Assembly (NCBI GenBank): GCA_002794465.1
Contig: MTSL01000174.1
Coordinates: 4,602-36,601, forward strand
Origin: Paramicrosporidium saccamoebae KSL3
Taxonomy: Eukaryota; Fungi; Cryptomycota
Reading direction: 5' to 3'
Length of the DNA stretch: 32,000 nucleotides
Positions 1 through 31,935 of this stretch are shown here, one piece after another (the stretch's first letter is position 1; each line of letters opens with the position of its first letter). The position numbers and the translations under genes are program-made. The notes under the pieces are model-generated. The model was not told where the DNA came from, did no database searches, and worked only from the letters and a program-made list of their open reading frames with translations.

Positions 1-1929
1 CAGTGGTTAATGTGCGGCATTAGCTGATCGTCCAAATAAAAGTTGAAATCCAAACCAATGGAGCGCAGACTGGAACATTGGCGACGCGCGATGGAGACAC
101 AATCGCCAATCAGACGGAAATCAATGTCATTTCCCTTGAACACTTGTTTGACAATCATGTTGACATAATGATTAATTTCCAGCTTGACCCAAAACACAAA
201 CCCTATTCCGTCAGATACCACGGCAAGACTACCGGCAGTCATAGTGTGATCCTTGAACGACGACACGTACCAATCGGCAGAGGCGCTAATGCTGCTAAAA
301 GTGGCAAATCCAATATCATTCACCGTCTTGGCCACGTCCCCCACATACCGCAAATGTCTACAAAAGATAATGTGCCATTGGTGTCACGATACTTTGTGCG
401 CTCTTTGATAAAATCACTGCGAGCTGCCAGAAACTTTTCGCGAGCCTCGTCAGGGAATCCAAGCACAACCAATCGTTGGATATGCTTTGACATGGCCTCT
501 TTTCCGATAATCAGATCAGAAATTTCATGATAGAGATAGTTTGCCAGCTTGGTTACTTGGTTCTGCAATCGCTGATTCAAAATGTGTAGAGATGAGGCTC
601 GTGGATCCATCTGAGCAATTTCATACTTGATTTTGTCGACAATCTCCACTGCCTTATCGTAGTGGCATTTGTCAGTGTCTTCGTTCAGTTCATCCAACAG
701 TCCCAGCATACCGCCAAACTTTTCAGGCGAAACATCGGGAAAGGGAGCGTCCATAGACTTTTTAACGACTGAAGATATGTTGGACGGACGACGACGGTGG
801 GATCCGGCCGTGTCCTTGGGAGACTTGACACGCACGGGGACTGGGCTTGGAGACGAGGGCGCCGGCGGCAAATCAGTCTGGGCTTGCTGGGTTTTTCTTA
901 TTTGCTGCAGCCAAAGCCGTTTTCCTGCAACATTTTCAGTCATTAAAATGACTTTTTCTCCTCCACGCACCACCTCGATTGCGTTTGAGAGATCTACACC
1001 AATCATGGACAGGTGAAAGGGTTTACGTTTTGAATCGGGAAGATCAGTAATGGCAACTTCATTAATAAGCCACAATCTTTCAATCGACAATTTTTTTGAC
1101 GATCCCCCGCCAAGAGGTAATCGTGTCTTTTTGGCTGAGGCCATGGCAATTGAGTCATTAAAAAGGTACAGGGTGATGGATTTGGGGCTTGATGATCCTA
1201 CAATTTCGGTAATCCCACTTCCTTCAAAAACTACAAATCTCTCCAGCGTCATGTATTTCTAAGCTCATATTAACAATGGGTGGGGAGAGTACTTCAAAAT
1301 CAGTGATAGTCTCCACTAGGGACAGCATCTTTTGCCGTCTCCCTTCAATATCTGCATCACTAGTTGTTTTGGAAGGTACAACCTGCTGTTGTTGCTGCAC
1401 GGTAATTTCCGCGGGTTCTTCCTCCTCTTCCTGTTCCTGTGTCTCTTCTACAAACATTACCAACCATCCACTCGGCCATACCAAAGGAGACGAAATCAGC
1501 AACACCGGCAGAGCTAACCAAGGCGTTGGCCGCCGACCTCAATGCGCTCTGGATCCCCCTCAGCTCATTTAATCCACCCTCAAACTCCATGATACCCTTT
1601 CCCACCTCCAGAAATTCGCCATGGTTCTTCCACACAGCCCTCTGCAACTCTGACACACTCTTCTCACATGCCGCTGTCAGACTCCGTAGGGCACCCTGTA
1701 CTGCCTCGTCAGTGTCCGCTTCCATCGTGCTCTTTAGATAGACCTCGGGGCGGTAATTCTCGGCGGCGAAGCTGGCCACGTCGAGACGAAGCGAAGCCCG
1801 CCGGTTGGCGAGGGCTTGACGACGGTTTCCATGGTCTGTGCCAGCAGCAAAGGAAACGGGCGGTTTAGCACCCGTGGGAGAGTGGGCAGGACTTTTTCTA
1901 GATGTCTTGAATGATTGTGGACTGTCCAT
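1..1929 (-). CDS. EXO84: Exocyst complex component Exo84 (3' end runs off the left edge of the window)
   Basis: N-terminal Vps51-like segment (LDVASFAAENYRPEVYL...LQRAVWKNHGEFLEVGKGI), a PH-like middle (LYLFNDSIAMA) and a helical C-terminus (IQRLVVLGFPDEAREKFLAAR...SADWYVSSF...GFVFWVK). Exons joined by hand with consistent phases: 1929-1482, 1447-1293, 1258-1027, 993-393, 357-233, 202-<1. Introns of 34, 34, 33, 35 and 30 nt, all GTA...TAG. Confidence 0.88.
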
Positions 1930-2398
1930 CCAATTGAATTTAGTTGGTTAACAGATTTGCTGGCCCAAGAGTCTATGGCATGATTTCATTCTATGCATTG
2001 ATGTTACGCGGCAATGTCAAAATGTTTATTTCTCGGGTGAATATCATGGCCGCAGTTATAGTTCAAGGGCCAGTCACTAATCCAAACTCAGTCACTCGCT
2101 CCTCTGCTATAGGAGTCTATCACTACAATTATCGTCTCTAATGTATGAACAGTTTTGTATCCAATATGTTAGAAATTATTCCCAGGTTGTGACAATCTCA
2201 CGAAGAATATTGTCAAGTAATTCGGGCTGCGACTATCACTCAATGGTGGCTGCGGTAACCATCACATCTACCCGCACTCATGATAATAGTAACTGTCTTG
2301 TATTTGCAAAGATTTCCATACCAAATCCAGTATTCTGATACCGTGGATAGCTAGCAATGTGTCATCCAATAAATATTGAAGCCGCGGTTGCAATTATA

Positions 2399-3298
2399 AT
2401 GTCAGCCACTGCAAGCACGCCCACCACGCCCACAACACCCACCACGCCTGCAGCTCTAACAGAAATCGGCTCATTGGAAGCCGCACTTGACCTCCTCCGT
2501 CGTCTTCCCCCACAGAACATTTCCACAAACCTGCTGCGGCTCCTTCGCCTGCTCCCCCACCATACCGCGTCTCTCCTAAACACTGTCGACCTGCCCACCA
2601 AGCCCGCAGTTTGTCCTGTCACGTCGCGCGAATACCTCGTTTGCGACTATAATCGCGACGGCGACAGTTACCGGTCTCCATGGAGCGGCGATTATGACCC
2701 ACCGACTGAGGGGCTGAAGCCGTCTGAAGAGCGTCGCAAACTGGAGGTCGTTGCAAATGAGGCTTTTGATACGTACAGGAGCCTTTATTACGAAGGGGGC
2801 GTGTCTAGTGTATATGTGTGGGATGTGCCAGAGGGCGGCTTTATGGCCGCCGTGCTGATTAAAAAGGAGACAGAGGCAGAAGGTCTGCGGGGCGGACAAT
2901 GGGACGCAATCCACGTCATCGAGGTTAGTGTTGCTGACAACAATGCAACTTATAAGCTCACCACCACGGTCATTCTGCATTTGGATTCTGTGGTGCCAAA
3001 ATTGGACGAATTCATGCTCGCCGGAAGCATCACTCGCCAAAGTGAGCAGACTATCCCGTTGAGCACTTCTTCCAACTCGGAGCATGTCGCCAACATGGGA
3101 CGACTTGTGGAGGAGATGGAATCGCGGATGCGTAACAATCTTCAGGAGATTTACTTTGGAAAGACGCACGATTTGGTCAATGAAATTAGACCAGTGATGC
3201 CGGCAGGATTCCTGAGACAGCAGGCTGACTTGCAGCGAGAGATGGCTGGCCGTCTCGCCGGGTCTTTGAATCTTCGATCAAGCAGAACTGAGGGCTGA
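2399..3298 (+). CDS. CAP2: F-actin capping protein subunit beta
   Basis: Family motifs AALDLLRRLPPQ, YLVCDYNRDGDSYRSPWS, AFDTYRSLYYEGGVSSVY, WDAIHV and HVANMGRLVEEME. Single exon. ATG 2399 chosen over 2357; short TP-repeat N-terminal extension. Confidence 0.96.
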   Translation: MSATASTPTTPTTPTTPAALTEIGSLEAALDLLRRLPPQNISTNLLRLLRLLPHHTASLLNTVDLPTKPAVCPVTSREYLVCDYNRDGDSYRSPWSGDYDPPTEGLKPSEERRKLEVVANEAFDTYRSLYYEGGVSSVYVWDVPEGGFMAAVLIKKETEAEGLRGGQWDAIHVIEVSVADNNATYKLTTTVILHLDSVVPKLDEFMLAGSITRQSEQTIPLSTSSNSEHVANMGRLVEEMESRMRNNLQEIYFGKTHDLVNEIRPVMPAGFLRQQADLQREMAGRLAGSLNLRSSRTEG

Positions 3299-3323
3299 AG
3301 CTGTGCAAGTAACGGACAGGTTA

Positions 3324-3533
3324 TATAAAATACTGTAATATTATGGGACTAACAGAGCTAATATGGCTACTAATTTTGTGGATTGACCCGGATTCACATG
3401 CTTCCCAAGGGCTTTGATTAAGCAAAACTATAAGGACGAGTTTATAAAATAGTGTAATATTGTGGAACTAACAGAGCCAATGTGGCTATCGATTTTATAA
3501 ATTGACGCGGGTTCACATGCGCTCTAGGGGCTT
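3324..3533. repeat. Diverged tandem duplication of the ArgRS last codons plus 3' flank (91 bp copies at 3324-3414 and 3443-3533, offset 119)
   Basis: Ungapped manual alignment gives 73/91 identity; 15 of 18 mismatches are transitions. Confidence 0.9.
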
Positions 3534-5282
3534 CAGACCGAGAAGTACCAGGCCATTTCCAAGAGTATATCGTGCAGACACATACAATGCCATGCGTGCC
3601 TTGGCCAATTCCTCCTTCTGTCCCATGACCCATAATCGATCCAATGCCGTGGACACTACTCTACTCAGACCCATCAGATACGCAACAATATTGCAGGGCT
3701 CCATGCTGAGACGTGCCTCTTGCACAATCTCTGGATATTGGGCGATCATGAGAGCAAGATCGACAGCTTCTTTCTCATTAAGCAACGAATAATCTATGGG
3801 ACCGGTAATATCGATGCCGCTCTTGCGCTGGATGGAGCAGAGACGGGCGTGAGCATATTGCAGGTACGGACCTGTGTCGCCCTCAAACTTGGTGACACGT
3901 TCTATTTTGAATTCATAGTCTTTAATTCGACGTGCAGACATGTCTTGGATGACAATAGCAGAGACGGCCAGCGTGTCGGCAACCTCTTCGGGGTTCTCAA
4001 TCTGAGCATACTTTTCAGGATTCTCCTTCATCACAGCGTGCATCACATCGCGAGCATCATCCAAAATGTCTTCCAGGAAGACAACCTGTCCCTTGCGAGT
4101 CTTCATGCCAAGCACCATACCAAAGTTAACATGAAGCACATTATCAGCCCATGGCTTTTCCATCATTTCAAGAATACGGATCAGCTGTTTCATGTGATGA
4201 TCCTGCTGCATCGCAATCACGTAAATGCTCTTGGCCAGGTCGTACGTCTCAAAACGATACTGAGCAGCGGCAATATCACGGGTCAAGTAGAGAGTGGTTC
4301 CGTCCTTCTTTACCACAATTGCCTTTCCCAAACCGTCAGCCTCCAAATCCACAATTTGGGCTCCCTGCGATTCTTGCACAATTTTCTTATCCTTCAGCTC
4401 TTGGATACGGTCCACCATCAGCTTTTCAAAATGTGACTCGCCAGAGTATACGTCAAATGAAACGTTCAGACGAGAGTAAATTTCTTTGTATTTGACAATA
4501 CTCAGGTCACAGAAACGGCGCCACAGCTTTAGTGTCTCTTCATCGCCACCTTCCATCTTTTTAAAGTATGCACGTGCCTCGTCGTCAATAGCGGGATCTG
4601 TCTCAATTTCCTTATTGATACGTACATAGACGTCGAATAAATGTCGAATGGGCTCCTTTACCAGCTCTTCCTCTGATCCATAACGGAGAAAACCCACTGC
4701 AAGCAACCCATACTGTTTGCCCCAATCTCCGAGATAGTTCATGCTGATCGTCTCAAATCCATTGGCGCGGTAGAGATGCGTCAGGAAATTTCCAATGACG
4801 GTGCTACGCAAATGACCCGCATGGAAAGGCTTTGCAATGTTTGGAGAACTGTATTCAACCAAAACTTTACGACCAGCTCCAATAGTGTTGCAGCCATATT
4901 TTTCTTTCTTTGCCAATGCATCACTGATGACCTCTTTTAGGACGTGGGCTGTATCCACGGCAAAATTTAAAAAGGGACCGACAGCGGTTACAGCTTTGAA
5001 TATCTCATCACGAGGAAAACGCTTCGCAAGGTCCTGCGCCAATGCCGCCGGATTTCCAGGCAGTCTCAATTGCGGTAATGGGAGGGAAAACTGTCCATGC
5101 TCCTCTTTCTTGGGTTTCTCAAGCATCAGGAATATTTTATCGGCAGGCTGCTCTAACAACTTTGATAGACGGCCAGCAAGGTCCTGGCGAAGGCTATTCA
5201 GAATGTATGTCGTGGGCCATACTCTATTGTCTACAGTGACCATAGATACCTCGCTGGTAGGTGTGAGAATGTTTGATGTCAT
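3513..5282 (-). CDS. RARS: Arginyl-tRNA synthetase (class I)
   Basis: 589 aa single ORF with VEYSSPNIAKPFHAGHLRS (HIGH motif), NYLGDWGKQYG, KKDGTTLYLTRD, EGDTGPYLQYAHARLCSI and the KPLERM C-terminus typical of ArgRS. Confidence 0.98.
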   Translation of the reverse strand: MTSNILTPTSEVSMVTVDNRVWPTTYILNSLRQDLAGRLSKLLEQPADKIFLMLEKPKKEEHGQFSLPLPQLRLPGNPAALAQDLAKRFPRDEIFKAVTAVGPFLNFAVDTAHVLKEVISDALAKKEKYGCNTIGAGRKVLVEYSSPNIAKPFHAGHLRSTVIGNFLTHLYRANGFETISMNYLGDWGKQYGLLAVGFLRYGSEEELVKEPIRHLFDVYVRINKEIETDPAIDDEARAYFKKMEGGDEETLKLWRRFCDLSIVKYKEIYSRLNVSFDVYSGESHFEKLMVDRIQELKDKKIVQESQGAQIVDLEADGLGKAIVVKKDGTTLYLTRDIAAAQYRFETYDLAKSIYVIAMQQDHHMKQLIRILEMMEKPWADNVLHVNFGMVLGMKTRKGQVVFLEDILDDARDVMHAVMKENPEKYAQIENPEEVADTLAVSAIVIQDMSARRIKDYEFKIERVTKFEGDTGPYLQYAHARLCSIQRKSGIDITGPIDYSLLNEKEAVDLALMIAQYPEIVQEARLSMEPCNIVAYLMGLSRVVSTALDRLWVMGQKEELAKARMALYVSARYTLGNGLVLLGLKPLERM

Positions 5283-9132: not shown

Positions 9133-11851
9133 ATGCCATGCATTTTAAAGGTTCATGTGGAGGCGGCTCGCGGCCTTCCCGCCATGGACAGTACATCTGA
9201 AGTGGCCGACGCCTATGTTGAGATTCGCTTTTCCGACTCTCTCCAGCGCACCTCTGTCTGTCGAAAGACGCTCAACCCGGTGTGGCGTGAAGATTTTCGT
9301 TTTGAAGTTCCTGACGATACGCTCCTGCAGGATGCGCCGCTGGAGCTAAAAGTGTTTGATTTTGATGCGATTACAGCGGACGATTCGGTGGGGATGGTGA
9401 CAGTAGACTTGAATCCGCTAGTTTCCTTGGAGGGCCCAAGCCAGATGGCGGGATGGTTCCCTATTTACGACACTATCCGAGGAGCGAGGGGGGAGTTGTG
9501 GGTACAAGTAAAGGTAGAATTCTTTGAAAATACCAATCCATTCAAAGAGTCTTCAGCTGGAATCCATTTGTTCAGTAGCTCCGGCATACCCGTACCTTAT
9601 ACCGTACGGCAACACGCTATGATTTGATTTTGCTTAGAATGCAATAATTGTGGGACTGGTGGACGAGGTCATTACGGAAATTGATCCCGACTATCACTGG
9701 TCCGATTCATTCCGCACCTCCCGTTCCTCTAATGAAGCTTCGCAGCGCATTCTGAGTCAAATGAGCTGTCGATTGCGCCGTCAGATGGGCAGAAAAGCGT
9801 TGGAGATGGGGGGCAATTCCATTCTTGCCTACTCACAATGGATCGATATTGAGCCGTATTCTCAGACCATAACCTTTCGTGGACTGGGCACTGCTGCGAT
9901 TATGCAACAGTCCGAGCAAGACAGCGATTCCAAAGACGCGATGGATGAGGAGATTCCACTCAAGCTGCATTCAAAGGGGATCGAATTGGCAACCATTAGC
10001 AAACTTCCGCCTGGGTGCATTTCAGGGATAGGAGGCGTGGTATCTGCAAAGAGCGTGAAATTGTTGTCTGATGAGACCGATTACAGTGACGCTATTACCC
10101 GCGATCGGTGGTTGTCAGAACTGAGAGATGAGATTAGATTACATGCCCGCAATCTTGGCTGTAATATCGTCCTCGGCTATCGCGAAAACATTTCAATTCA
10201 CGAGGATTTGTACATTTTGGCTGCAGAGGGGACCGCATGTAGAATCCGGGGAAGAGAGATGCGTCGTCATCAGTTGCGTGATGATCGTTCCTCAGAGGAT
10301 GAGACTTTAGTTTCTGAAAAGGCCGAAAGAGTAAAACGTGTAGTCAAGCGACTCAAGGAGTGTGCCTTTTGTCATCTACCCAGACGAAAGGCAATACAGA
10401 GAACTGTCATGGCCAACTCTTCGACTTGTAATATTTGTAGAAAAATGCTAGTCCCAGAAATGTTGCTAGCCACCACTGAACTTACCTCGGATGTTGAAGT
10501 TTTTAGAGATCAGCGTCTGGTTGAAAGTTTTGTTTGTAGGCCACTAAGGAGGAAGAAAGACGGCGAGCCCACTGCCGCTACAGTCAGCTTGAATCTTCCA
10601 TTTGTAGAGTATGACTTGTACCGACAGTTGCAATTTAAGCTTCGCTACTATGGATTTAATGCTGTCTTTGGATTGAGGTATCAAATACTGGCGAGTGACA
10701 CTATGATTGTCGCATTGGCCAGCGGAACAGGCGCATGTTTGGCTGCTCTCCCTGAGCCGCAGGCTTTACAAATATCCCGTAACATTGACATTCGCGATGC
10801 AGAAGACGAGCAAATCTTTAGCTTCCAGGAACGGGTGGCCAAGGCATCCTCTTCTACATACGACATTATCCATGAAATGTATTCTGACCGCTTCCAGTCG
10901 ACATCTTCGGAGAGTTCATCAGATGCAGAGGACTCTCCCAGCTCTTCATCAAGCTCGAGTTCTTCGGAGGGTGATTTATCTGACGATCAGTCTGTTGTAC
11001 AAATTGATGATGAAGCTGACGAGGACTTGTTGTTGACTCTGGTTGAGCCTAACATTTCCACTGCCGTCTTGGCAGGAACATTGGATACCCAGCCATCAGT
11101 GGATCCATCCCTGTCACCCTGCTCCTCTCTCCACCAAATATCCCATTTTGTGTGTCAATTCCGTCGAGTCAATATTGCCAAAGAGAACCATCATCCAAAT
11201 TCAGCTCTGTCAACGCAATTCAGCCGCCACTATGAAGAAATGATTGCTCAGCTCGATGGTTTGTTTACGGGGACGCCACGGATCCACTGCATTCGACATC
11301 AACTGAATTTGGTCCGCAGTGTTGAATTGCAAATTGTGACTATTGCCACGGTATTTGGAACGGTCAATGTCCCTGTGGCATCCAGCAAGGACTTGCTTGA
11401 GCCGATCACATTCGACTGGGCGGAACAGGATGTCATCTCCAGTGACTCGGACGACGAAGATGCGGTTCCCACCCGTCCTGGTACGGATACTTCTCCAACT
11501 GTTGTCCCGCCCGCTTCAATTTCCTTCACGACCGGCACCCACACCCCCAGCTCTGTCCTCGTCGACAACTGCGGCACCATCGCCGTACAGCTGTTTAAAG
11601 AAATCTATTCGCACGAAAGCGCTGGCGGCTTCCCTGGGTTCGTAAACTCTACCATCTCTGATGCATTCTCCATCACAAGAGCATATGCCGCCTCGCTAGG
11701 CGGAAACGCAGTGACAGCGGTTGCATTTAAGCCAGCGGCATTTTATGAAAATTTCAAAAATCAGATGCATGTAGTAATGTCTTTGACAGCGGACGTGGTG
11801 GAGGTGGAACATGACCGAGAAACGGCTTGGTCCTTGTTACAATCAATTTAG
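9133..11851 (+). CDS. C2CD5: C2 domain-containing protein 5-like (C2 domain plus repeated YbjQ/UPF0145-like segments)
   Basis: N-terminal C2 domain (LKVHVEAARGLPAMD...DAYVEIRF...TLNPVW...DFRFEV). A 34-nt intron at 9604-9637 joins in frame to GLVDEVITEIDPDYHWSDSFRTSRSSNEASQR. Four G(G/C/F)N(S/I/A)(I/V) helix-strand repeats; about 894 aa. Confidence 0.85.
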
Positions 11852-12788: not shown

Positions 12789-13388
12789 ATGTGGTCACAA
12801 ATTCTCTTCATACTACCTGTCGTTGTGGCTTCGTACATTTCGAATGTACCGAATTGTAGATACGGCAGTACACCAGAGCTTCCTGTCCCAGTCCCCACTC
12901 CGAACTCTAGAGTGCCGAATTTATCGGGGTCCAGACGTAGTACTAGACCGTATCTTTCCTCAAACTCTATGCCGAGATCCGAACATGGCAATACATTGAA
13001 TACTATTATCCCCACCACCATTTCAAGCTCCACGCATAGCACTAGCGCGAATTCTACTGTCTCAAACCCCATTCCACGTTCTACGCGCAGTACCAGAGTG
13101 AGTGCTGTTGTCCCAGAGGCCTTTATGAACACTAAATCATCAGCCTGCCCATACTCGAGAAATTTATACACCAAAAACCCGCCAGGTTACCAACGCCCGA
13201 GCCTTTCAAATGCTGAATACAACCAGAAGCTGGATGCTATCGACCGCAACATTATGCTTATTGATACGCAGCTAGCCCTCGCTGTAACAACTGATTCTGG
13301 ACATATGGTAGATAGGCAACAGGAGCTGATCCATTGTCTCGAATTCCTGTGTCGTGAGCGGCTTAGGGTGGTTGCTGCAGGCTACTAA
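12789..13388 (+). CDS. Orphan protein with a putative signal peptide, S/T/P-rich middle and helical C-terminus (199 aa)
   Basis: MWSQILFILPVVVA leader; low-complexity Ser/Thr/Pro/Arg region; heptad-like YNQKLDAIDRNIMLIDTQL...RQQELIHCLEFLCRERL. Confidence 0.7.
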   Translation: MWSQILFILPVVVASYISNVPNCRYGSTPELPVPVPTPNSRVPNLSGSRRSTRPYLSSNSMPRSEHGNTLNTIIPTTISSSTHSTSANSTVSNPIPRSTRSTRVSAVVPEAFMNTKSSACPYSRNLYTKNPPGYQRPSLSNAEYNQKLDAIDRNIMLIDTQLALAVTTDSGHMVDRQQELIHCLEFLCRERLRVVAAGY

Positions 13389-13518: not shown

Positions 13519-13791
13519 ATGCGGCATGCAATTCTATTATTAATACTAGTCAGTCTTGTTGCTGCTAGCCGACACCGCCGTCCGACCCCGCCATCAGCCT
13601 TCAAAATGGCAATGGTCCGCAAATACATGGTGGTCAATCCTGGCGATCATTTACGCAACCCAGAAACAACGCAAAAGTATCTGAGGGAGCTTTTGAGATT
13701 AGTTAACGAAGGAAAAGCATACCTTGAACCCGAGGAAGAGCGTTATTTGCGTTCCTGGTTTGAAGACGACGATTGCTGTATCACTTTTTAA
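13519..13791 (+). CDS. Small orphan protein with a putative signal peptide (90 aa)
   Basis: ATG 13519; MRHAILLLILVSLVAA is a textbook n/h/c leader, followed by SRHRRPTPPS and a charged helical domain. Confidence 0.7.
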   Translation: MRHAILLLILVSLVAASRHRRPTPPSAFKMAMVRKYMVVNPGDHLRNPETTQKYLRELLRLVNEGKAYLEPEEERYLRSWFEDDDCCITF

Positions 13792-13826
13792 ATAAACCTG
13801 GGGTTGTTCAGGCCTGGGTGACCAGG

Positions 13827-14372
13827 ATGCGGGATGAGGCCAAGAATGGCGACTTTGCACCCGTTCAACTGGACAGCGCATTCAGCGAATCTGACGGCTT
13901 CTACGCACACTACAAGTCCATCCCCGCTGGTCAGCGAAAACTTGTGCTTGTTCGACTGCCCTGCAACATACCGACAAGCGCCATGAAAGACGTGTCGTTG
14001 CGTGCGTCAAAGAAACGTGCTATGGGCGAGTTTGAACATGACGGCGGACGATACGAAGTTCGATGCACAGGCGAAACGCCTGCTGCCGCACTTGTTGTTC
14101 CGGGGAAAAAGGGTTGTCACATCAGTATATATACTACAAGCGCTAATTTTGCAGATTCCGAGTTCCACGAGGTCTGGAGTGCAATACGTGTGAAAAACGA
14201 CAACGCCGAGGAGCAAGGCACTGAGCTGGATTTTGACGGTGACGTTGGTGGCAGTGAGGCGCTGATGGTGCAACCAAAAGGACTACGAACAAATCTGCGA
14301 GCCACTGATTTCTCCACTGTAATCAATAGGAAACGCAAGGCAGCCAGTCCTGCCAAGAAGAATAAAAAGTAA
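13827..14372 (+). CDS. RPA34: Probable RNA polymerase I subunit RPA34/A34.5 (PAF49-like)
   Basis: Recognised from memory by the RKLVLVRLP-x-N strand motif, the QPKGLR motif near the C-terminus and the Lys-rich tail RKRKAASPAKKNKK. Probable in-frame 30-nt intron at 14125-14154 (GTATAT...GCTAAT...GCAG). Confidence 0.6.
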   Translation: MRDEAKNGDFAPVQLDSAFSESDGFYAHYKSIPAGQRKLVLVRLPCNIPTSAMKDVSLRASKKRAMGEFEHDGGRYEVRCTGETPAAALVVPGKKGCHISIYTTSANFADSEFHEVWSAIRVKNDNAEEQGTELDFDGDVGGSEALMVQPKGLRTNLRATDFSTVINRKRKAASPAKKNKK

Positions 14373-14375
14373 CAC

Positions 14376-14529
14376 TAGACTGGCAATAAGCTAAGAGTAG
14401 GCTGATAATAGACTAGTAATAGACTGGTGATAGACTAGTAATAGATTGGTGATAGACTGATAATAGACCGGTAGTAGACTGATAATAGGCTGATAATAGA
14501 TTGACAATAGACTGAAAACAGACTGATAA
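14376..14529. repeat. 11-bp minisatellite, 14 copies, consensus TAGACTGATAA
   Basis: Exact 11-nt register without indels from 14376 (tagactggcaa) to 14519-14529 (cagactgataa); substitutions vary between units. Confidence 0.95.
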
Positions 14530-14559: not shown

Positions 14560-15046
14560 TTACTCGTAGACCATAGGGCTAATGGCCATGGTGTAGGAGC
14601 ACACGCCATTGGGGAACCAAAGGGCAATCTCCTTCTCGGCACTCTCCACACTGTCGGAGCCATGGCACACATTGCGTCCCAAATCAATTCCGTAGTCGCC
14701 ACGGACGCTGCCGGGAGCACTTGCCAATGGGTTGGTCTCGCCGAGCATCTTGCGGCCAGTCTTGACGACATCCTTTCCCATAAAGACCATGGCCAGGACG
14801 GGTCCTGATGCCATGAAATCGCAAAGTCCATTGAAGAAGGGCTTTGAGGAGAGGTCGGCGTAATGCTTCTCTAGATGCGCACGTCCGGGCTGCATCAACT
14901 GCGCAGCAAGCAACTGGTATCCACGCTTCTCAAAACGGGCCATGATTTCACCAGCCTATGATTAGTGCGCCATGGATGGATGCTACCAGTCCGCGTTGGA
15001 CGCCGTCGGGCTTAATCATAAGGAAGGTACGTTCGGTGTTGGACAT
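14560..15046 (-). CDS. NDK1: Nucleoside diphosphate kinase
   Basis: [20 protein letters not shown], then a 31-nt intron (14956-14986, with CACTAAT branch), then [12 protein letters not shown]...[10 protein letters not shown] (catalytic His); 151 aa. Confidence 0.98.
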
Positions 15047-15343: not shown

Positions 15344-15455
15344 CAACACAATAACTAAACAAAATTATAACTAAACAACATTATAACAACACAACATTAT
15401 AACTAAGCAACATTATAACTGCACGACGTTATAACTGCGCAGCGTTATAACCTTA
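15344..15455. repeat. 16-bp tandem repeat, 7 copies, core TTATAAC, in the NDK/MUT divergent intergenic region
   Basis: Units caacacaataactaaa, caaaattataactaaa, caacattataacaaca, caacattataactaag, caacattataactgca, cgacgttataactgcg, cagcgttataacctta. Confidence 0.93.
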
Positions 15456-15504: not shown

Positions 15505-17774
15505 ATGAGGCATGCATTGCGGAGCATAAAAAGGTCTCAATTTGTAGCCCAAAAGAGCACCTTGGCCTTAAATCCGGCATGGTCCGAGTTGGTGGCGAAA
15601 GAGTTAAAGGGAAAGAAGGCTGATGAGTTGGCCCGGAAGACGGCCGAGGTAATGGCGGCCATGTTGGTTAATTGATAAGGGAATCACCATCAAGCCACTC
15701 TACACAAAGGACGACACTAAGAAGATAGCCGATGAGCTTCCTGGACAGTTCCCGTACACCCGCGGCCCATATGCTTCCATGTACACCCACCGTCCATGGA
15801 CCATCCGTCAATATGCGGGGTTCAGCACGGTGGAGGAAAGCAATGCATTCTATAAGAAGAATCTGGCAGCCGGGCAGCAGGGACTGAGTGTGGCTTTTGA
15901 TCTTGCCACTCATCGGGGCTACGACTCGGACCATCCTCGTGTGACTGGTGATGTAGGGATGGCGGGGGTTGCAATTGACAGTATCGAAGACATGAAGATC
16001 CTCTTTGACGGAATCCCGTTGGATCGAATGTCTGTGTCAATGACAATGAACGGAGCTGTGCTGCCCGTAATGGCCATGTACATTGGAGCCGCCATCGAAC
16101 AGGGAGTAAAGACGGAACAACTGGCCGGCACCATACAAAACGACATTCTGAAGGAATTCATGGTCCGAAACACCTTTATCTATCCTCCCGAGCCGTCGAT
16201 GCGCATCATTTCCGATGTCTTTTCCTACACGGCCAAGGTATGGCGAGACTTTATGCTCATGCCGCGTAGAATATGCCGAAATTCCATTCCATCTCCATCT
16301 CAGGCTATCATATGCAGGAAGCTGGCGCCGATGTTGTTCTTGAACTCGGATTCACCATTGCCAATGGTTTAGAGTACATTCGGACCGGTTTGGCAGCGGG
16401 TCTGGCTGTGGATGAATTTGCTCCACGTCTGTCATTCTTTTGGGGGATTGGCATGAATTTCTACATGGAAATTGCCAAAATGCGGGCAGCACGCAAATTA
16501 TGGGCAGAGTTGGTGAAGGAAAAGTTCAAGCCGAAGAATGCAAAGTCGGTACAGCTTCGGACCCATTGTCAAACGTCGGGATGGTCGCTGACTGAAAAGG
16601 ATCCATACAACAATGTGATTCGAACAACAATCGAGGCCATGGCAGCCGTGTTTGGTGGAACACAGAGTCTTCATACTAATTCGCTCGACGAAGCTGTGGC
16701 TCTGCCTACCGAGTTTAGTGCCCGGATTGCCCGAAACACCCAGCTGGTTTTACAATGTGAGACGGGAATCACTCATGCAGTTGATCCCTGGGGTGGGTCG
16801 TACTTGATCGAGTCGCTGACTAAGGACGTCTATGATGCAGCTAAAGCCTTGATTGAGGAAGTGGAGGCGATGGGAGGAATGGCCAAGGCAGTCGCATCGG
16901 GGATGCCCAAACTTCGGATCGAAGAGGCAGCAACACGGAGACAGGCCTTGATAGACTCTGGACAAGAAGTCATTGTAGGTGTGAACCGATACCAATCTGA
17001 CAGCAAGGACAATGTCCAAGTACGGCCATTTCCGTTCTCACAATGTAGGTGCTGTCGGTCGATAATGCCACAGTTTTGAAGAAACAGGCAGCAAGACTGA
17101 AAAAGATAAAATCTTCTCGAGACGAAAAGGCGACTGCAAAATGTCTTGCTGCTCTGACAAATGCGGCAAAGACAGGAAAGGGAAATCTATTGGAATTGTC
17201 TGTAAATGCTGCATTGGCCCGGTGTACTTTGGGCGAAATATCCAACGCTCTTGAAGATGTGTGGGGTCGACATCAAGCAAGCAGCACTGTCGTCTCTGGT
17301 GCCTACAAGTCGGCCTATGGCGATTCCGCCGCCATTGATGCCACGATTCGTCGTGCTAGCGAGTTTATGGAACGCCATGGTCGTCGTCCTCGCATTCTCG
17401 TTGCAAAACTGGGCCAGGATGGCCATGATCGCGGCGCCAAGGTAATTGCCAGCAGTTTTGCCGATTTGGGCTTTGATGTGGATATCGGCCCTCTTTTCCA
17501 GACTCCCGAAGAGGTATTGCGACAGGCATTGGACTCGGATGTACATGTGATTGGGGTGAGCACATTAGCAGCAGCGCATCGGACGCTTGTTCCCGAGCTC
17601 ATCCGACTGCTAAAAAAGAACAAAGCAGGCCATATAGCAGTAATCTGCGGCGGTGTCATTCCGGAAAAGGACTACAAGGATCTGTACAACCAAGGCGTCG
17701 CTGCCATATTTGGGCCCGGCACGCCCATTCCCGAATCGGCCCTCAAGATTATTGATCTCATTGATAATTGTTGA
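15505..17774 (+). CDS. MMUT: Methylmalonyl-CoA mutase, adenosylcobalamin-dependent, with mitochondrial presequence
   Basis: [50 protein letters not shown] and the B12-binding DxHxxG motif ([10 protein letters not shown]). Arg-rich acid-free leader [13 protein letters not shown]. Introns 15649-15679 (31 nt), 16238-16269 (32 nt) and 17020-17048 (29 nt); 725 aa. Confidence 0.98.
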
Positions 17775-20785: not shown

Positions 20786-21994
20786 ATGAATGGGATAGCA
20801 GTCAATGGAGCGGCAGAATTGGCGCAGCTGCGAGAAGAACGACGCCATTTGCAGGGGGAGAGGGAGGTGCTGTTGAGGGAACATTACCCGTTGATCTTGG
20901 ACACTTTGTCGATAGCTGATGAATTGGCCAAGCGGGTGAGAGAATTGCGTACCACCCTGAACACCTTCACCGGGGAGACCCTCCCACAGTTGGAAGCCCT
21001 CACAACCTTTGACCATGTTGAAAATAACATTGTGAGGCCCCATCGCGAGCGAAGTGAACGACTGCGTCAAAACATGAAGGAGGAACAGAAGCAGAGACAG
21101 AAATTGCTAGTGGAACGTTCGATCCAGCTGCTGCAATCAAATGTGTCGTTGAGCACCTGTCTGAGAGTGGTAAGCACACTGAAACAGCAGCGAGAGTTTA
21201 TTGAAGAGCCGACAAAGTTAGAACGCGTCTTTTTGGATGCGAGGAGACGACACTTGACAGTGATCATTGAGGAGAGTGTCATTAAGAAGAAGGACTTGAT
21301 GGACAATATCAAGCTGTTTGAGGCACTGGTAAAGGCGATGAGGGAGCCAGTTCTGGATGTTGTGACCCAATACAGGGCGGCGTTCTCTGACCTTTATCCA
21401 CTGAGCCGGTTTCTTGTGGCGCGGATCGACTGGTTCCTAGTGTCCATTGAGGCGCTAATCAAGAATGCGCGCAACACGTTGGTTCTGGCCTCTTTTTGGA
21501 ACCAACTGGTCCTGCTGAATGCTGCCTATGTCGGCATCGGTGCCTCTTTTCTTCCACTGGTTGAGCCTGTCTTTGTCCAGCAGGCCATGCAACTGATCAA
21601 CGCCTCGGCGTCCGCCAGCTGGCAATACTTTCAGGCCAAGGGGACGGAGGTGTCCTTTCGACGGCCATCCAACAGTCTCAAAGTCCCAGCCTCTGCGGGA
21701 AAGGATATTATCCCACCCATGGAGATTACCGAGTTTCCATGGCTGGCTTTGATGATAAACTGTTTTGTCGATGTCTATGAGCAGATTCAGGTGTTTGCCA
21801 TCCCTCCCATGAAGAAGCCCATAAGCAGTGTGATAGATAAGCAATTGACTTTGTTCACCAACTACTTTGAGAATCGGTGCCGAAACGAGCCAGAGGAATC
21901 TGTGCTCGCCTTCAAGCAGTGTCTGGACACTGTTGCACGGCCCTTTGTCGAGGCGACCCTTGAAGGCTATTTTGCGGCCATCTCATCTGTATAA
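20786..21994 (+). CDS. COG8: Conserved oligomeric Golgi complex subunit 8 (Dor1-like), shortened
   Basis: LSTCLRVVSTL, VFLDARRRHL, VLDVVTQYRAAF, VGIGASF and PPMEITEFPWLA match COG8 blocks (LPACLRVI, FLQAR, FDIITQYRAIF, RVGADF, PPMVLLDFPPLA) as I recall them; 402 aa. Confidence 0.8.
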   Translation: MNGIAVNGAAELAQLREERRHLQGEREVLLREHYPLILDTLSIADELAKRVRELRTTLNTFTGETLPQLEALTTFDHVENNIVRPHRERSERLRQNMKEEQKQRQKLLVERSIQLLQSNVSLSTCLRVVSTLKQQREFIEEPTKLERVFLDARRRHLTVIIEESVIKKKDLMDNIKLFEALVKAMREPVLDVVTQYRAAFSDLYPLSRFLVARIDWFLVSIEALIKNARNTLVLASFWNQLVLLNAAYVGIGASFLPLVEPVFVQQAMQLINASASASWQYFQAKGTEVSFRRPSNSLKVPASAGKDIIPPMEITEFPWLALMINCFVDVYEQIQVFAIPPMKKPISSVIDKQLTLFTNYFENRCRNEPEESVLAFKQCLDTVARPFVEATLEGYFAAISSV

Positions 21995-22120
21995 ATTAAG
22001 CAACCAAATTTCCTTTTATGTAGCACATTAACCTCAAAACGGCGATAGCTCTGCCCCCAACCAATAATACGGTTGCATCTTTAGTGGCTGTCCAACAGAG
22101 CGGCACTGGGGACGACGATT

Positions 22121-23336
22121 ATGCTCGAGCAGCGCGAGCAGCAAGAAGAGGGGGTGACGGTGCCCTCCGCATCCACAACACTAAAGGAAGGATATCTCCG
22201 AAAACAGGCACATAATTTTGGACGTGACTGGGGACGAAGATACTTTGTGTTGTCCCCCACTCATCTCTCCTACTACCGCCATCATACTGTACCACAAAAG
22301 ACATTGTAATGTGTAGGATCCGACGCCACGATGCACCATTGAATTGATCTCGGCAAGTGTCAAGTCGGCGGTCGGGGAAAAGTATCAATTGCGACGCTTC
22401 CGACTGCTGACGCCGGCGCGGGAGTATTTATTGGAGGCGGAGAGTGAGGAGGATGCACAGGAATGGAGCAGCACAATACATGCGACAATCATTTCTGCCA
22501 TTATGGGTGGATCACAGCAGGTTCCAGAGGGATTAGGCGGACTGGTCTGCGGCGGACGGATGTTGGTGGAGATGATTACAGCAATTGACGGGAACAATGT
22601 CTGTGCAGACTGTGGGACGACTAATCCAACGTGGGTTTCCATCAACCTGGGGATTGTGCTGTGCATTGATTGTTCGGGGATTCACCGCAGTCTGGGCTGC
22701 CAGATATCCAAGGTGCGGTCGTTGGAATACGATACATTTATGCCCGAGACCATTGATGTAGTCAAGGCCCTGGGAAACCGCATTATCAATGCATTTTGGG
22801 GTGCCGAGCTGTCCAATCCGCCCAAGATGAACAGTTCTGCGGAGCGATGCACTTTTATTGAGGAAAAATATCTCCATCGCGTCTATACAGGCGACAAGAC
22901 CAGTCTGCGTCGGCTCTCTCCAGTGGCTACCTCCAGGACGCCGTTTACTTCCCCCGAACTCTCTCTATTCTCATCTGTCCAGACACCATATCTTCCCTCC
23001 ACAGCCGCGCTTCTCTTTCATCACGGCGTGTCGCCCCTCACCATTCACCATATAACCCGCACCAGCGCCTTGCATTGCGCGGCTGCTGCGAACCAGCTCC
23101 TCCAAGTGCATCTCTTGCTCCTGAATGGCGCAGAGGTAGTTGGACGAGATGGGGAGGGGAGGACGGCAGCCGAGGTAGCGTTGCGGTGTGGCAATGAAAA
23201 GGTTGCCGAACATTTGGTCAAGTTTATGGGGATGCAGGCGCGGGGATTGAAGCGGACAGGCTCTGTGCGGTCAGGCGGAATAATTCAATCCAATGCAGCT
23301 GTTGCGCAACGGATACGAAAAGGTTTGATGCAATGA
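22121..23336 (+). CDS. Arf GTPase-activating protein, PH-ArfGAP-ankyrin architecture (ACAP/centaurin-like, no BAR domain)
   Basis: PH domain (KEGYLRKQ...WGRRYFVL...YLLEAESEEDAQEW) across a 28-nt intron at 22289-22316; zinc finger CADC-x16-CIDC with SGIHRSLG; ankyrin repeat SALHCAA...GRTAAEVA; 395 aa. Confidence 0.92.
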
Positions 23337-24931: not shown

Positions 24932-26843
24932 ATGGAGGGACAGTTGCGATTTGCACCATTCACAAGTGCCATTTCAGTGTCGTTTTGGACCTCGCTAGCA
25001 AGGAAAAAAATTAACGAATGGAAGTTGGATGATGGTGACTTGGCTATCTGGGGATACTACGAGGCTGGAGTACAGAACCGTTCGCCCCGTTTACACATTA
25101 CGGAAGAGTGTCTGGAAGGAGGACAGCTCAGTAGTTCCAAGTACATAGAACCCTGTGCTTATGTGTAGTCTGAGCGTGAGGATGAATGGAACGCTGAGAT
25201 TGTACAACACACTGGAAGATTTCAAAGACGTCGACAAGGCCCAAATAATGGCCAATGTCAAGACGCAAGTAACGGCCAATGCCCAAATCACGACCGATAG
25301 CGCACAGTCCCTCCTGGGGTTTGTGATGATTGCATTTGCAGACTTGAAAAAACACAAATACTACTACCACATTCTATATCCCGCCCTCTTTGATCCGCAT
25401 GCAGTTGCTACCTGCATTCGGGAGACAATACCGGGAAATGTCGATTTAAAGCAGATTCGGAGAACGGCAATGGAAAACCGTCGGCCATGGTTCCGTATGA
25501 CCACTGAAGAGTATTCAATGTTGGTATTTGTGGATCCAGGACCTCTTCTGGAGGGAGTGTTGGGATGGCCGGCACGGAACATGATTTGGACGGAATGTCG
25601 GGACAAAACCAAGGTGCTCTGTCTGGCCCAAACCTTGAATGACACTAAGATGTTTTCTATTCAACAGAAATGCGCAAGTGATTCTCCCCAGGTGACGGGA
25701 TGGGAAAAGAACGAAACAGGTGCAGTGGCTCCCACAATAGTGGATCTGGCACCGCTCATGGATCCGCGACGATTGGCCCAAGAGGCAGCAGATCTTAACA
25801 TCCGTTTGATCAAATGGCGTCTGCTCCCCGACCTAGATATTGACCGATTCAAAACGGCCAAAGTGCTGTTGTTTGGGGCTGGGACGTTGGGATGTAATGT
25901 CACGCGTCTGCTATTGGGCTGGGGAGTCCAGAACATTACGTTGGTGGACAATGGCCGCGTTTCCTTTTCCAATCCGCCACGCCAATCGCTCTTCCGCTTC
26001 GAGGATTGTGTAAATGGTGGGCGTCCCAAGGCAGAGACGGCGGCTCTGCGTGCCCTTGAAATTGATCCAAATGCAAAGGTGGTGGGTATTTCCACACATA
26101 TTCCAATGCCCGGACATGTGATCACTGATAAGGCGACAACTCGGAAGGACGTGGAAAAGATTATGAAATTGGTGGATGAACACGACATTCTCTTTCTCCT
26201 GACAGATTCGCGAGAGAGTCGATGGCTTCCGGCGGTCCTCGGCTCAGCTGCCAACAAGACGGTCATTACCATTGCCCTCGGTTTTGATTCATATGTGGCC
26301 ATGCGACACGGCTCCGGGGGTACTAAAGAACGATTGGGCTGCTACTTTTGTCACGACATTAATGCGCCAGGGGACTCGATGAAGAATCGCACGCTTGATC
26401 AGCAATGCACCGTCACTCGTCCGGGTATCTCGTATCTGGCGGCAGCAACCGGGGTGGAATTACTAGCGGCGATCCTGCAACATCCTCTAGGCAATGCGGC
26501 TCCAGCTACCATGACCCCCAATGCCACTGATGCACTTTCTGCCGATACATCATTGCTGGGGGTGATACCGCATCAAGTGCGGGGTTATCTGTCCCATTTC
26601 CAAAACATGCAGCTGATTGGAGAGGCATTTCAATATTGCACCGCCTGTTCGTCATCCATCCAACAAGCCATCCACACCGATGGATGTGATTTCCTTATGA
26701 AGGCTCTCGAAGATCCCTCCACTGCTGCTCTCATTAGTGGTGCCTCCTCCCTCCAAATAGATCCCATCGAAGCAGATCCGATTGACAACGAAAACGACAT
26801 CAATAACGAGAGTGATAATGGGAATGAGTTTTGTCTACTCTAA
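24932..26843 (+). CDS. ATG7: Ubiquitin-like modifier-activating enzyme ATG7
   Basis: N-terminal LRFAPF...FW...K...WKLD; 28-nt intron at 25141-25168; GTLRLYNTLEDFK, GWPARN, GAGTLGC, DNGRVSFSNPPRQSLF and LDQQCTVTRPG (catalytic Cys); 627 aa. Confidence 0.97.
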
Positions 26844-27015
26844 GCCATGTGTGAAAGATGAGAGGAGAGTGTATTCAAGAGTATCTGTGATTCAAAGTAT
26901 GCAAGTAAGAGTGTATTTAATAATATATCCAAGTGTACATTTGTAGACTTGTTAAACGAATCATGATAAGCGAAATCACGAAAGTCGAGTAACATTTACC
27001 CCACTTCATCCCCCC

Positions 27016-27060
27016 CACTCCACTCCACTCCACTCCACTCCACCCAACTCAACCCCACCC
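27016..27060. repeat. (CACTC)5 microsatellite plus C-rich flank
   Basis: Five perfect CACTC units at 27016-27040, then cacccaactcaaccccaccc; preceded by a C-run. Confidence 0.95.
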
Positions 27061-27094
27061 ATATCTAATATACTGATTTTTATCAACAATTTTA

Positions 27095-28740: not shown

Positions 28741-28815
28741 ATAAACATGAATGTTGTACCGACTAGTATTCCTTTGTGAATTGTCTCTTACTGGCCCGTC
28801 CCCTTGACTCTACTA

Positions 28816-29294
28816 TTAAATATCCCTATACAATGAGTATATTTTCGCGGTTGCACGGGTCAGCTTGTCTCGTTCAGCCTCCGCAGCGTCTCCGCCAAAC
28901 CTCTCTGTCGCCATTCCCCTCCTCCTCAACCGTCCCCGCAGTTCCCCCAATATCCTCAGTTCTCCTCCCAGCGTACCCTCCATCGCCTCCAGACGTGTCA
29001 TGCCAGTCTGTACGCCAAAGGCCCCACCCAGCGAGGCGCCCGACACGGCAGCGCCAGAAGTGACGAGTAGTTTGCAGAGACGACTGCTGTGTTGGCCGAG
29101 ACTCATAATATAGCCCGCTGCGGAGCCAATGATACAGCCTGTGATTGCTAGCAGAGTCATGAACACTGCACGTATGGAATACTGACCGTGATGAGAAAGC
29201 GACGAGCCCGCTGTATTTCGCTTAATTCGTGCTCCGTCAGCTCCATAGTGTCTATCAATGTCTGTTGCGCATCGATGCGTTCCAATATGCTCAT
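28816..29294 (-). CDS. Orphan small membrane protein with two Gly-rich TM helices (about 147 aa)
   Basis: ATG 29294, exon 1 MSILERIDAQQTLIDTMELTEHELSEIQRARRFLITV. A 35-nt intron at 29148-29182 (GTATTC...CTAG) joins in frame to TITGCIIGSAAGYIM...LLVTSGAAVSGASLGGAFGV. The extreme C-terminus may contain a further intron. Confidence 0.7.
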
Positions 29295-29397
29295 CCTCCC
29301 CAAGAATGAGTGAATTCAAAATTTATTTTTAAATCTCGATTCGCTCTAGGGTCGTTATAATTTCTAAAAGGCTAGCCCGCTGGTTGCGTATTAATAG

Positions 29398-30410
<1,013 letters not shown>

Positions 30411-30488
30411 AATAATAAATCTAACCATATTTGTGGAATGGTTATTTAGGGGGGGGTGATGTGGTGAATCAAATATAGAAAGAAGATT

Positions 30489-30634
30489 CCAAGTCCAAGT
30501 CCAAGTCAGAGGCGAGAGGCGAGAGGCGAGAGGGGAGAAATGACAAGATTGACGCTTTACCTACACTTTACCGTCTCCACTTTCCTCCTCTTCCCTCCTC
30601 TTCCCTCCCCTCCCCTACCTTACCTTACCTTACC
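30489..30634. repeat. Block of simple repeats: (CCAAGT)3, (AGAGGCG)3-4, then pyrimidine tract (CTCCTCTTCC)2/(CCCCT)n and (TACCT)n
   Basis: Read directly from 30489-30540 (purine-rich) and 30580-30634 (pyrimidine-rich). Confidence 0.9.
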
Positions 30635-30715
30635 ACGCACCAGGGATTCCCCAATAAAGGGCCGTATTACTAATCTCACAATGTTCATTTTCCCGATTTG
30701 GAGTGCGGCGCGTTC

Positions 30716-31935
30716 ATGTTGAGCGCTATTGATGTGGTCGCAGTGGCCGAGAGTGCGGGCTCGAATATGGTTCTGAATGACGAGAATGCCCGTCGGATTC
30801 CGCTTCGGCTGCCCATTCTGCAAGATTCCGAAGTAGACATTATGAGCTTCTCTGCCGACTTTCTTCCTTTCAGTATCCATCTTAAGGGGCACTGAACGGT
30901 CTAGAACATTCGCATTTTATGGCATTGGAGACGGCTGTGGGACCGGTTTGTGTAACTCTGCGTCGCGGCGATGTATACGCATTTGTTATGGTAAGGACGG
31001 CCCTTGGAACGGACCATCTACGGATACCGATGGACCAAATATCTCGTCCGCACTGGTACGAGCGTCTGTTTAGGAAATGGCCGTCTGTTGAGGAGGTTCT
31101 TAGAAAGGCAAAGCATCCGTTGGCAGCAGCACCATTTATCAGGGTCCGAGACCGAAGTGTTGGGAACAGTTTGATTAAACTGGATGAACGATTGGTCATT
31201 GGTAGCCATAAGATTGGAGTTGTCTATGCCGGTGCTGGCCAGTCCGACCTTGATCAAATGCTCTCTAATAACACCCGTACTCGCCAAGGACCTGTTTAAT
31301 TCTAGATGACGTCTCGGGACAGTTTTGGAGGTTTGTCTCCTTTCTGGGACATTCAATAGAGTTGCGTGGCTGGCATGGCTTTAATGGCGGGCTAGACACG
31401 GTCTACGACCACACGGGAACCACCAGCTATTACACAAAATGGCAGCAGCTAGAGTTCATGTTCCATGTCGGACCCTTAATACCCATCTCCCATGCTGATC
31501 CCCAATACGTATCGGTGGAGGGAGGGCTGACTTGTAGGTGGAGAGGAAACGACACATTGGGAATGACATTGTACTTGTAGTGTTCCGCGACCGAGCCGCA
31601 CCAGCTGTGAATCTGGCCAAAATTTATTCTAGACAGATCCATGGGGTGCTTATTGTCACTCCGACCTCTGCCGATTCCGAGTTTTCCTTCCATCTCGAGA
31701 TTTATCGACACAAGAATATGCCGCACATTCCCTCCTTTGTCGAAGAGCCCAACGTGTATTCCCTCAGCGATCCTGACCATCGATCCATGTTCCTTGCCAA
31801 GTGTACGTCCCCCAACTTGTTAACGGCATAGTGTTATTTACCGAGAGGATTAGCTATAAGACGCCTGATTTCGCAACACTCTTACATCGTACAAGGAGTT
31901 CCATGCTGCGAGAGCTTGTTGTTGAATATTTGTAA
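30716..31935 (+). CDS. Rap1 GTPase-activating protein family (Rap/Ran-GAP domain)
   Basis: HKIGVVY, FLG...L.GWHGFNGGLDT..DHTG, EFMFHV and ERKRHIGNDIVLVVF (Asn thumb), ending LAKLLFTER...HRTRSSML. Exons 30716-30872, 30905-31276, 31306-31508, 31538-31802, 31832-31935; introns of 32, 29, 29 and 29 nt. Start codon uncertain. Confidence 0.9.

Follow-up and report, generated by a model that had tools for sequence, protein, structure and literature searches.

How are introns of about 30 nucleotides (nt) recognized when nothing of their 5′ splice site beyond GTA is conserved? The question is raised by a 32,000-nt stretch of the genome of Paramicrosporidium saccamoebae KSL3 (here called the window; its position 1 is position 4602 of contig MTSL01000174.1, assembly GCA_002794465.1), an intranuclear parasite of amoebae that belongs to the Rozellomycota and is sister to Microsporidia (PMC5701793). 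An earlier interpretation of the same stretch, made from its letters only (the sequence-only reading), had listed 19 tiny introns and suggested a spliceosome that measures intron length. The analyses presented here demonstrate that these introns carry three short signals with a near-constant spacing between the 5′ end and the branch site, and we consider it likely, with a probability of roughly 0.8, that they are ordinary GT-AG spliceosomal introns which have shrunk to near the smallest size that the splicing machinery handles and are defined by those three signals.

Nineteen introns of 28–35 nt in ordinary genes

All 19 introns of the sequence-only reading were located, and they have the lengths that it had given:

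EXO84 intron 1: 1448..1481, minus strand, 34 nt, GTATGG...TGTAG
EXO84 intron 2: 1259..1292, minus strand, 34 nt, GTACTC...CTTAG, TTAAT branch motif
EXO84 intron 3: 994..1026, minus strand, 33 nt (a multiple of three, no in-frame stop), GTAAAC...TGTAG
EXO84 intron 4: 358..392, minus strand, 35 nt, GTATCG...TGTAG
EXO84 intron 5: 203..232, minus strand, 30 nt (a multiple of three, no in-frame stop), GTAGTC...AATAG, CTGAC branch motif
C2CD5 intron: 9604..9637, plus strand, 34 nt, GTACGG...CTTAG
RPA34-like intron: 14125..14154, plus strand, 30 nt (a multiple of three, no stop), GTATAT...TGCAG, CTAAT branch motif
NDK intron: 14956..14986, minus strand, 31 nt, GTAGCA...CATAG, CTAAT branch motif
MMUT intron 1: 15649..15679, plus strand, 31 nt, GTAATG...ATAAG (AAG acceptor)
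MMUT intron 2: 16238..16269, plus strand, 32 nt, GTATGG...CGTAG
MMUT intron 3: 17020..17048, plus strand, 29 nt, GTACGG...TGTAG
ArfGAP intron: 22289..22316, plus strand, 28 nt, GTACCA...TGTAG
ATG7 intron: 25141..25168, plus strand, 28 nt, GTACAT...TGTAG
Small membrane-protein gene (TM orphan) intron: 29148..29182, minus strand, 35 nt, GTATTC...GCTAG
DIM1 intron: 29739..29770, plus strand, 32 nt, GTAATC...TGTAG
RapGAP intron 1: 30873..30904, plus strand, 32 nt, GTATCC...TCTAG
RapGAP intron 2: 31277..31305, plus strand, 29 nt, GTACTC...TCTAG
RapGAP intron 3: 31509..31537, plus strand, 29 nt, GTATCG...TGTAG
RapGAP intron 4: 31803..31831, plus strand, 29 nt, GTACGT...CATAG

The terminal counts that had been reported are exact (all 19 introns open with GTA; 17 close with TAG, the RPA34-like one with CAG and MMUT intron 1 with AAG), and the described lack of a conserved G at +5 is borne out, with G found there in 5/19 introns and GTAAGT in none. 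Beyond GTA, the other six positions of CAG/GTAAGT match at ~27%, which is the random level. An IMPase gene outside the window contributes three further introns (32, 32 and 34 nt, all GTA..TAG), so that the whole sample comprises 22 introns in 11 unrelated genes over ~39 kb of one contig; every one of the 19 and all three IMPase introns start with GT and stop with AG, as introns of the major (U2) type do. GTA..TAG pairs spaced 28–35 nt number 86 on both strands of the window, against 52 ± 7 in Markov-1 simulations; the pattern therefore exceeds chance, and the excess is close to the number of real introns.

The introns lie in ordinary genes, at a density of ~0.75 per kb of coding sequence, in a genome of 48% GC that uses the standard code. 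Gene labels are backed by Pfam for EXO84, F-actin capping beta, ArgRS, two choline-transporter-like genes, C2CD5, MMUT, LARP1, COG8, ArfGAP, TTC4, ATG7, an LRR protein and DIM1, and by contig gene tables together with matches to solved structures for NDK and RapGAP. The RPA34 label found no support in Pfam, and we call that gene RPA34-like; a homologous open reading frame (ORF) exists in a syntenic relative. The ArgRS ORF (3513–5282, minus strand) is intronless.

When frames were joined by dynamic programming with any GT..AG of 18–150 nt permitted, the entire window merged into a single ORF. ORF logic alone is therefore unable to find these introns, and homology was used instead. Two further candidates were rejected: a 34-nt GTATCA...TTCAG (13778–13811, upstream of the RPA34-like ORF) does not pass the frame test, and a 35-nt GTATAA...TGTAG just after COG8 (21989–22023) lies where the COG8 of relatives stops at the same place as the unspliced ORF.

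Introns of the minor (U12) type are marked by A/GTATCCTT at the 5′ site and by the branch site TCCTTAAC close to their 3′ end. None of the introns described here has GTATCCTT. RapGAP intron 1 (30873–30904) starts with GTATCCAT, a 7/8 match to GTATCCTT; this likeness is probably a coincidence, because the intron carries no U12-type branch site near its 3′ end.

Spliced products are collinear with known proteins

Removal of most of the introns had been said to restore conserved reading frames, and we find that 16/19 are needed for an open reading frame. Spliced MMUT aligns with human MMUT over 707 residues and spliced NDK with solved NDKs over 147 residues, both with no gap, and residues 28–318 of spliced DIM1 align with residues 22–312 of human DIMT1 (291 residues, gapless). 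The alignment of RapGAP with Rap1GAP crosses all four junctions, gapless at introns 1, 3 (...PQYV/ERKRHIGNDIV) and 4, and with a 2-residue indel near the junction of intron 2, which is frame-restoring. After splicing, the N-terminus of ATG7 is collinear with residues 9–158 of yeast Atg7 (with a 1-residue gap near the junction), and removal of the ArfGAP intron yields a complete PH domain (Pfam E = 1.4e-16).

In the remaining genes, EXO84 intron 1 restores the frame and unites two GenBank genes as one EXO84 of 885 amino acids (aa), EXO84 introns 2 and 4 are frame-restoring as well, the C2CD5 intron links a C2 exon with a YbjQ_2 exon, and the ATG7 intron unites two GenBank genes. The TM-orphan intron restores the frame and is supported by ORF continuity and by its conserved position in one relative. 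On these comparisons, and those with relatives given below, the existence of all 19 as small GT-AG introns is confirmed at the sequence level.

Relatives carry longer introns at the same positions

Protein searches with EXO84 and TTC4 identified relatives of 47–85% protein identity and the same gene order (SRR21707646, SRR28204431-34, DRR438482, SRR28640814 and JGI metagenome 3300042204), and five related genomes were compared. The gene order kept in the relatives runs through helicase, Rad51, ArgRS, CapB, EXO84, CTL and C2CD5 and continues with NDK, MMUT, LARP1, COG8, ArfGAP, TTC4, ATG7 and LRR. A metagenome scan with RapGAP gave no match, and one with MMUT gave only full-length homologues of 63–67% identity and no close relative. 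Introns in the relatives were placed by local junction scoring; a greedy whole-gene finder was dropped, having mis-called in-frame introns in divergent regions. Eight intron positions shared with relatives were compared:

NDK intron: 31 nt in P. saccamoebae, 57 nt in a relative, same position
EXO84 intron 4: 35 nt in P. saccamoebae, 52 and 49 nt in relatives, same position
EXO84 intron 5: 30 nt in P. saccamoebae, 47 and 50 nt in relatives, same position
MMUT intron 1: 31 nt in P. saccamoebae, 48 nt in a relative, same position
MMUT intron 2: 32 nt in P. saccamoebae, 81 nt in a relative, same position
ATG7 intron: 28 nt in P. saccamoebae, 42 and 48 nt in relatives, same position
Small membrane-protein intron: 35 nt in P. 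saccamoebae, 52 nt in a relative, same position
ArfGAP intron: 28 nt in P. saccamoebae, 28 nt in the closest relative (85% protein identity), with 24/28 bases identical

At seven of the eight positions the relatives' intron is longer (42–81 nt), which argues that the shrinkage is recent; as judged from the sequences compared, it is confined to P. saccamoebae and its closest relative. The introns inspected in syntenic relatives measure 38–89 nt; in relatives with introns of 42–89 nt, GTA is found in 18/20, TAG in 17/20 and G at +5 in only 10/20. Since these longer introns also have a weak 5′ site, the weak 5′ site is a property of the clade and older than the shrinkage. P. saccamoebae and its relatives provide a graded series of orthologous introns (28, 42, 47–57 and 81 nt), and this makes intron shrinkage toward a floor directly testable inside one clade.

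The introns EXO84-1, -2 and -3, C2CD5 and MMUT-3 are absent in relatives: there the ORF runs without interruption and matches the spliced product in exact collinearity; the EXO84-2 junction (ETITDFE/KYM) is gapless against relatives, as is the C2CD5 junction against a relative's uninterrupted ORF. In the small membrane-protein gene another relative has a 34-nt intron 16 codons downstream. More generally, intron positions vary among the relatives, some having been gained or lost, and extra introns occur in the EXO84 and MMUT genes of relatives.

A positioned branch motif, and not length alone, distinguishes the introns

The branch points had been described as often weak or not visible. This description is not supported: TNAY with its A at intron position 21–25 is present in 18/19 introns and in 9/69 decoys, the decoys being the 69 other GTA..TAG pairs of 28–35 nt in the window. 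The stricter YTNAY is found in 13 of the 18 TNAY-bearing introns, and the motifs seen are CTAAT, TTAAT, CTGAC, TTGAT, CTCAY, TTAAC and similar. When only the 17 real GTA..TAG introns are considered, the relaxed motif occurs in 16/17 against 9/69 decoys (Fisher p = 3e-10) and the strict motif in 12/17 against 2/69 (Fisher p = 3e-9), with both strict-motif decoys sitting in an intergenic tandem repeat. The branch A lies 6–12 nt from the intron 3′ end, the acceptor is the first AG after the branch A in 18/19 introns, and the spacing between the 5′ end and the branch A is tighter (standard deviation 1.4) than intron length itself (2.3). A scan of flanking DNA with the three-part signature recovered 2/3 IMPase introns, and its other hits, in AT-rich intergenic DNA and tandem repeats, were unsupported as introns.

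Length, which the sequence-only reading had put forward as a possible ruler, proved insufficient alone. Within mature sense mRNA there are 13 GTA..TAG pairs at 28–35 nt that remain unspliced, where 10.9 are expected from other spacings; selection against such cryptic pairs in mature mRNA was tested and none was seen. The relaxed branch motif is present in only 1 of these 13. As correctly spaced pairs are left unspliced and are not depleted, end motifs and length are insufficient, and the positioned branch element adds the missing specificity.

These observations bear directly on the proposal that the lineage evolved a spliceosome of a new kind, which works by intron definition, measures length as its main determinant and has altered U1 and/or U6 small nuclear RNAs (snRNAs). 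The canonical 5′ end of U1 is ACUUACCU, and the canonical U6 box is ACAGAGA. A 5′ site that is uninformative past GTA, with +5 G at background frequency, and the very narrow length range would both fit such a machinery, and U1 has not been identified in the related Encephalitozoon cuniculi (PMC3629993). Nevertheless, we regard the proposal as unlikely, given the 13 undepleted, correctly spaced pairs, the branch motif that tells real introns from decoys, and the relatives, whose longer introns share the GTA/TAG preference and the weak +5 G, so that the weak 5′ site precedes the shrinkage. Searched with Rfam, the window and five fetched loci yielded only a tRNA, and no snRNA.

A proposed mechanism of recognition across the intron

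We suggest that ordinary GT-AG introns are recognized here across the intron by three signals. The first would be the 5′ GUA; the second, a degenerate branch site (yUnAy) whose A stands 21–25 nt from the 5′ end; and the third, the first AG, nearly always UAG, 6–12 nt past the branch A, the acceptor presumably being found by scanning from the branch. The constant spacing may represent a steric floor, that is, the minimum span needed for the 5′ site and the branch to meet, and genome compaction together with deletion bias could have driven the introns down to this floor. A model of this kind, floor plus deletion bias, has been argued for the 16–17 nt introns of Mikrocytos (PMC10245619). The 5′ site might be read with only about three base pairs to U1, aided by proteins or by U5/U6; alternatively, U1 may be divergent or missing, as reported for E. 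cuniculi. What is said here of a steric floor and of U1 goes no further than inference.

Several points weigh against this interpretation. The sample is small (22 introns, ~39 kb, one contig), and a 120-bp intron in S23 has been reported for the P. saccamoebae genome (PMC6349667). The branch motif and its position window were picked after the data had been seen; when the IMPase gene is taken as an independent test, 2/3 of its introns fit the 21–25 window, and the best motif of IMPase intron 2 lies at position 18, outside it. Finally, the case for the introns is built on comparison of DNA and protein sequences; when ten spliced or alternative models were looked up for exact matches among 15 billion proteins, the only match was the truncated NDK of GenBank, and that collection offers no transcript-derived support.

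A bolder version can be formulated, according to which this lineage, after its split from relatives that have kept introns of 42–89 nt, squeezed essentially all its introns to a hard floor of ~28 nt and kept only GUA; the choice of the 5′ site would be effectively U1-independent and measured back from the branch, and EXO84-3 and the RPA34-like element would be recently intronized coding segments, perhaps translated when retained. We hold this version to be doubtful.

Three frame-neutral candidate introns

Three of the introns, EXO84-3 (33 nt), EXO84-5 (30 nt) and the RPA34-like intron (30 nt), are multiples of three without an in-frame stop, so frame logic is silent on them and relatives have to be consulted. 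At the position of EXO84-5, introns of 47 and 50 nt that shift the frame and contain TACTAAC or TACTAAT are found in relatives, and alignment with yeast Exo84 leaves an 8-residue gap at the intron site; on this evidence we firmly place EXO84-5 among the introns. For EXO84-3, exactly these 11 codons are missing in relatives, and a branch-like ATGAT places its A at position 24. For the RPA34-like element, the relative's ORF has a 10-residue gap at the place of the 30 nt. Both are probably introns, as far as sequence comparison indicates, and EXO84-3 is the least certain among the 19.

It might be argued that some of these elements, EXO84-3 above all and also the RPA34-like one, are not obligatory introns but insertions of coding sequence or segments whose retention is optional. 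Their lack of a frame effect and their absence from relatives would suit such an origin, as would the slightly higher Pfam score of the EXO84 PH domain (PH_EXO84) with the 33 nt kept (35.1 vs 31.2 bits spliced), and in Paramecium intronization of exonic GTA/TAG segments has been described (PMC11334263). Yet excision of each element at exact GT..AG boundaries produces collinearity with relatives, each of the three has TNAY at the right position, as only 13% of the decoys do, and the EXO84-5 site is occupied by an unambiguous frame-shifting intron in relatives; we therefore think this improbable.

How far the class extends

The introns had been presented as a uniform class. The narrow range of 28–35 nt stands for the window, and strict uniformity does not, in view of the 120-bp S23 intron reported elsewhere in the genome. 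That intron is described as having the internal conserved region of microsporidian long introns (PMC6349667), and, with a sample from a single contig, it might indicate that the window is unrepresentative and that introns genome-wide are broader in length or of two classes, as in Microsporidia with short and long introns, the 28–35 nt introns being only one part. We find this quite unlikely, considering that 22/22 introns over ~39 kb in 11 unrelated genes are all 28–35 nt long, and that MMUT, NDK and DIM1 align end to end and leave no room for more introns. That the elements are not introns at all, and instead are assembly errors, pseudogene frameshifts or sequences eliminated at the DNA level, is hardly conceivable even though the calls were made from DNA and not from transcripts, as the elements are uniform in length and all show GT..AG ends and a branch-like motif, frames are restored exactly in ten genes, and eight elements sit at intron positions of independently assembled related genomes, with other lengths in seven.

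Consequences for the public gene models

Genes in GenBank were called with MAKER and with AUGUSTUS trained on Rhizopus (PMC5701793). These models and the homology models disagree at window positions 1–1929, 14560–15046, 15505–17774, 20786–23336, 24932–26843, 29419–30410 and 30716–31937, and, judged by homology, the public annotation of GCA_002794465.1 is wrong at many of these intron sites. NDK is given as 127 aa, without exon 1; EXO84 is split into genes of 189 and 662 aa and ATG7 into genes of 78 and 553 aa; two models are fusions, one of COG8 with ArfGAP and one of RapGAP with the short-chain dehydrogenase downstream of it. MMUT (688 aa vs 725), DIM1 (285 aa vs 319) and C2CD5 (862 aa vs 894) are shortened by over-long predicted introns in the GenBank models. 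P. saccamoebae is a key comparison point for gene loss in Microsporidia, and truncated or split models in such a genome can distort conclusions on gene content and gene loss.

Upstream of the RPA34-like ORF lie two ORFs without Pfam matches, 13606–13791 (61 aa) and 12789–13388 (199 aa); GenBank models the 61-aa, 199-aa and RPA34-like ORFs as one 439-aa gene with 264 nt of introns. Left of the window, between Rad51 and the helicase (locus L001, 18359–19307, plus strand), there are two overlapping ORFs in different frames and no GenBank gene, an arrangement that suggests another unannotated intron-containing gene.

Repeats and a tRNA gene

Apart from the genes, the stretch contains several repeats. 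A 91-nt direct repeat (3324–3414 and 3443–3533, 80% identical, 119-nt spacing) sits where the capping-protein and ArgRS genes converge, in the short stretch that separates their 3′ ends. Intergenic tandem repeats occupy 14376–14529, 15344–15451, 27000–27060 and 31960–32000. Among the arrays are an 11/22-nt TAGACTGRTAA array between the RPA34-like and NDK genes, which yields false hits of GTA..TAG plus branch motif, a 16-nt ATAACTAAACAACATT array upstream of MMUT, a CCACT-rich array, and a GCTGA repeat that extends into an assembly gap just beyond the window end. A tRNA gene of ~116 nt (locus L001, 16213–16328), presumably intron-containing in view of that length, lies ~0.9 kb left of the window start, just downstream of EXO84, and is found in the same place in relatives.

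Comparison with known tiny-intron systems

In the literature searched, no paper was found that describes such introns for P. saccamoebae, and the terms 'intron', 'splic' and 'snRNA' never occur in the main text of the genome paper (PMC5701793). The likeness to the tiny GTA...TAG introns of Paramecium, to which the sequence-only reading had pointed, does hold: in Paramecium >95% of introns are 20–34 nt long with GTA/TAG ends (PMC11334263), and the two organisms share introns that cluster narrowly around 30 nt, begin with GTA, end with TAG and are numerous in the genome. The likeness is one of convergence, because P. saccamoebae is a fungal relative and Paramecium a ciliate. Paramecium depletes stop-free introns whose length is a multiple of three, whereas in P. 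saccamoebae lengths that are a multiple of three are weakly under-represented (3/19, binomial p = 0.08, in a small sample with detection biased against stop-free introns of this kind) and all three are stop-free.

Among Microsporidia, the sister lineage, E. cuniculi has 37 introns of 22–76 nt, most of which interrupt genes for ribosomal proteins; their 5′ site and branch motifs are strict, and U1 has not been identified in this species (PMC3629993). The size range, the GT-AG ends and the compact parasite genome are shared with P. saccamoebae; unlike those of E. cuniculi, the P. saccamoebae introns are many, lie in ordinary genes and conserve only GTA at the 5′ site. The S23 introns of the fellow rozellid Rozella allomycis are ~30 nt long and without the 5′ site and branch motifs that E. 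cuniculi conserves (PMC6349667), and one species among early-diverging fungi, in a set to which Rozella belongs, is reported to have a median intron of 29 bp (PMC8042348). The likeness to Rozella, in the ~30-nt length and the missing motifs, is one by published description and not by sequence, and the introns of 38–89 nt in the syntenic relatives argue for a shrinkage separate from Rozella's.

Other ultra-short classes, including those of Stentor and the chlorarachniophyte nucleomorphs, have likewise converged on a narrow lineage-specific minimum in compact or parasitic genomes (PMC10245619, PMC13644364). The introns of Mikrocytos (16–17 nt) are strongly conserved in sequence (PMC10245619), myxobolid myxozoans and Dicyema have median introns of 22–27 bp (PMC13644364), and reduced splice-site motifs have been reported for myxozoans (PMC10245619, PMC13644364). 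Unlike the shorter Mikrocytos, Stentor, nucleomorph and myxozoan classes, that of P. saccamoebae has a floor of ~28 nt and a sequence that is nearly free beyond three short elements. A moderately intron-rich genome with a GUA-only 5′ site and a fixed-distance branch offers a natural test of minimal splice-site recognition. Considering that tiny classes have arisen many times, in Paramecium, Microsporidia, Rozella, mikrocytids and myxozoans, P. saccamoebae adds one more to a known kind.

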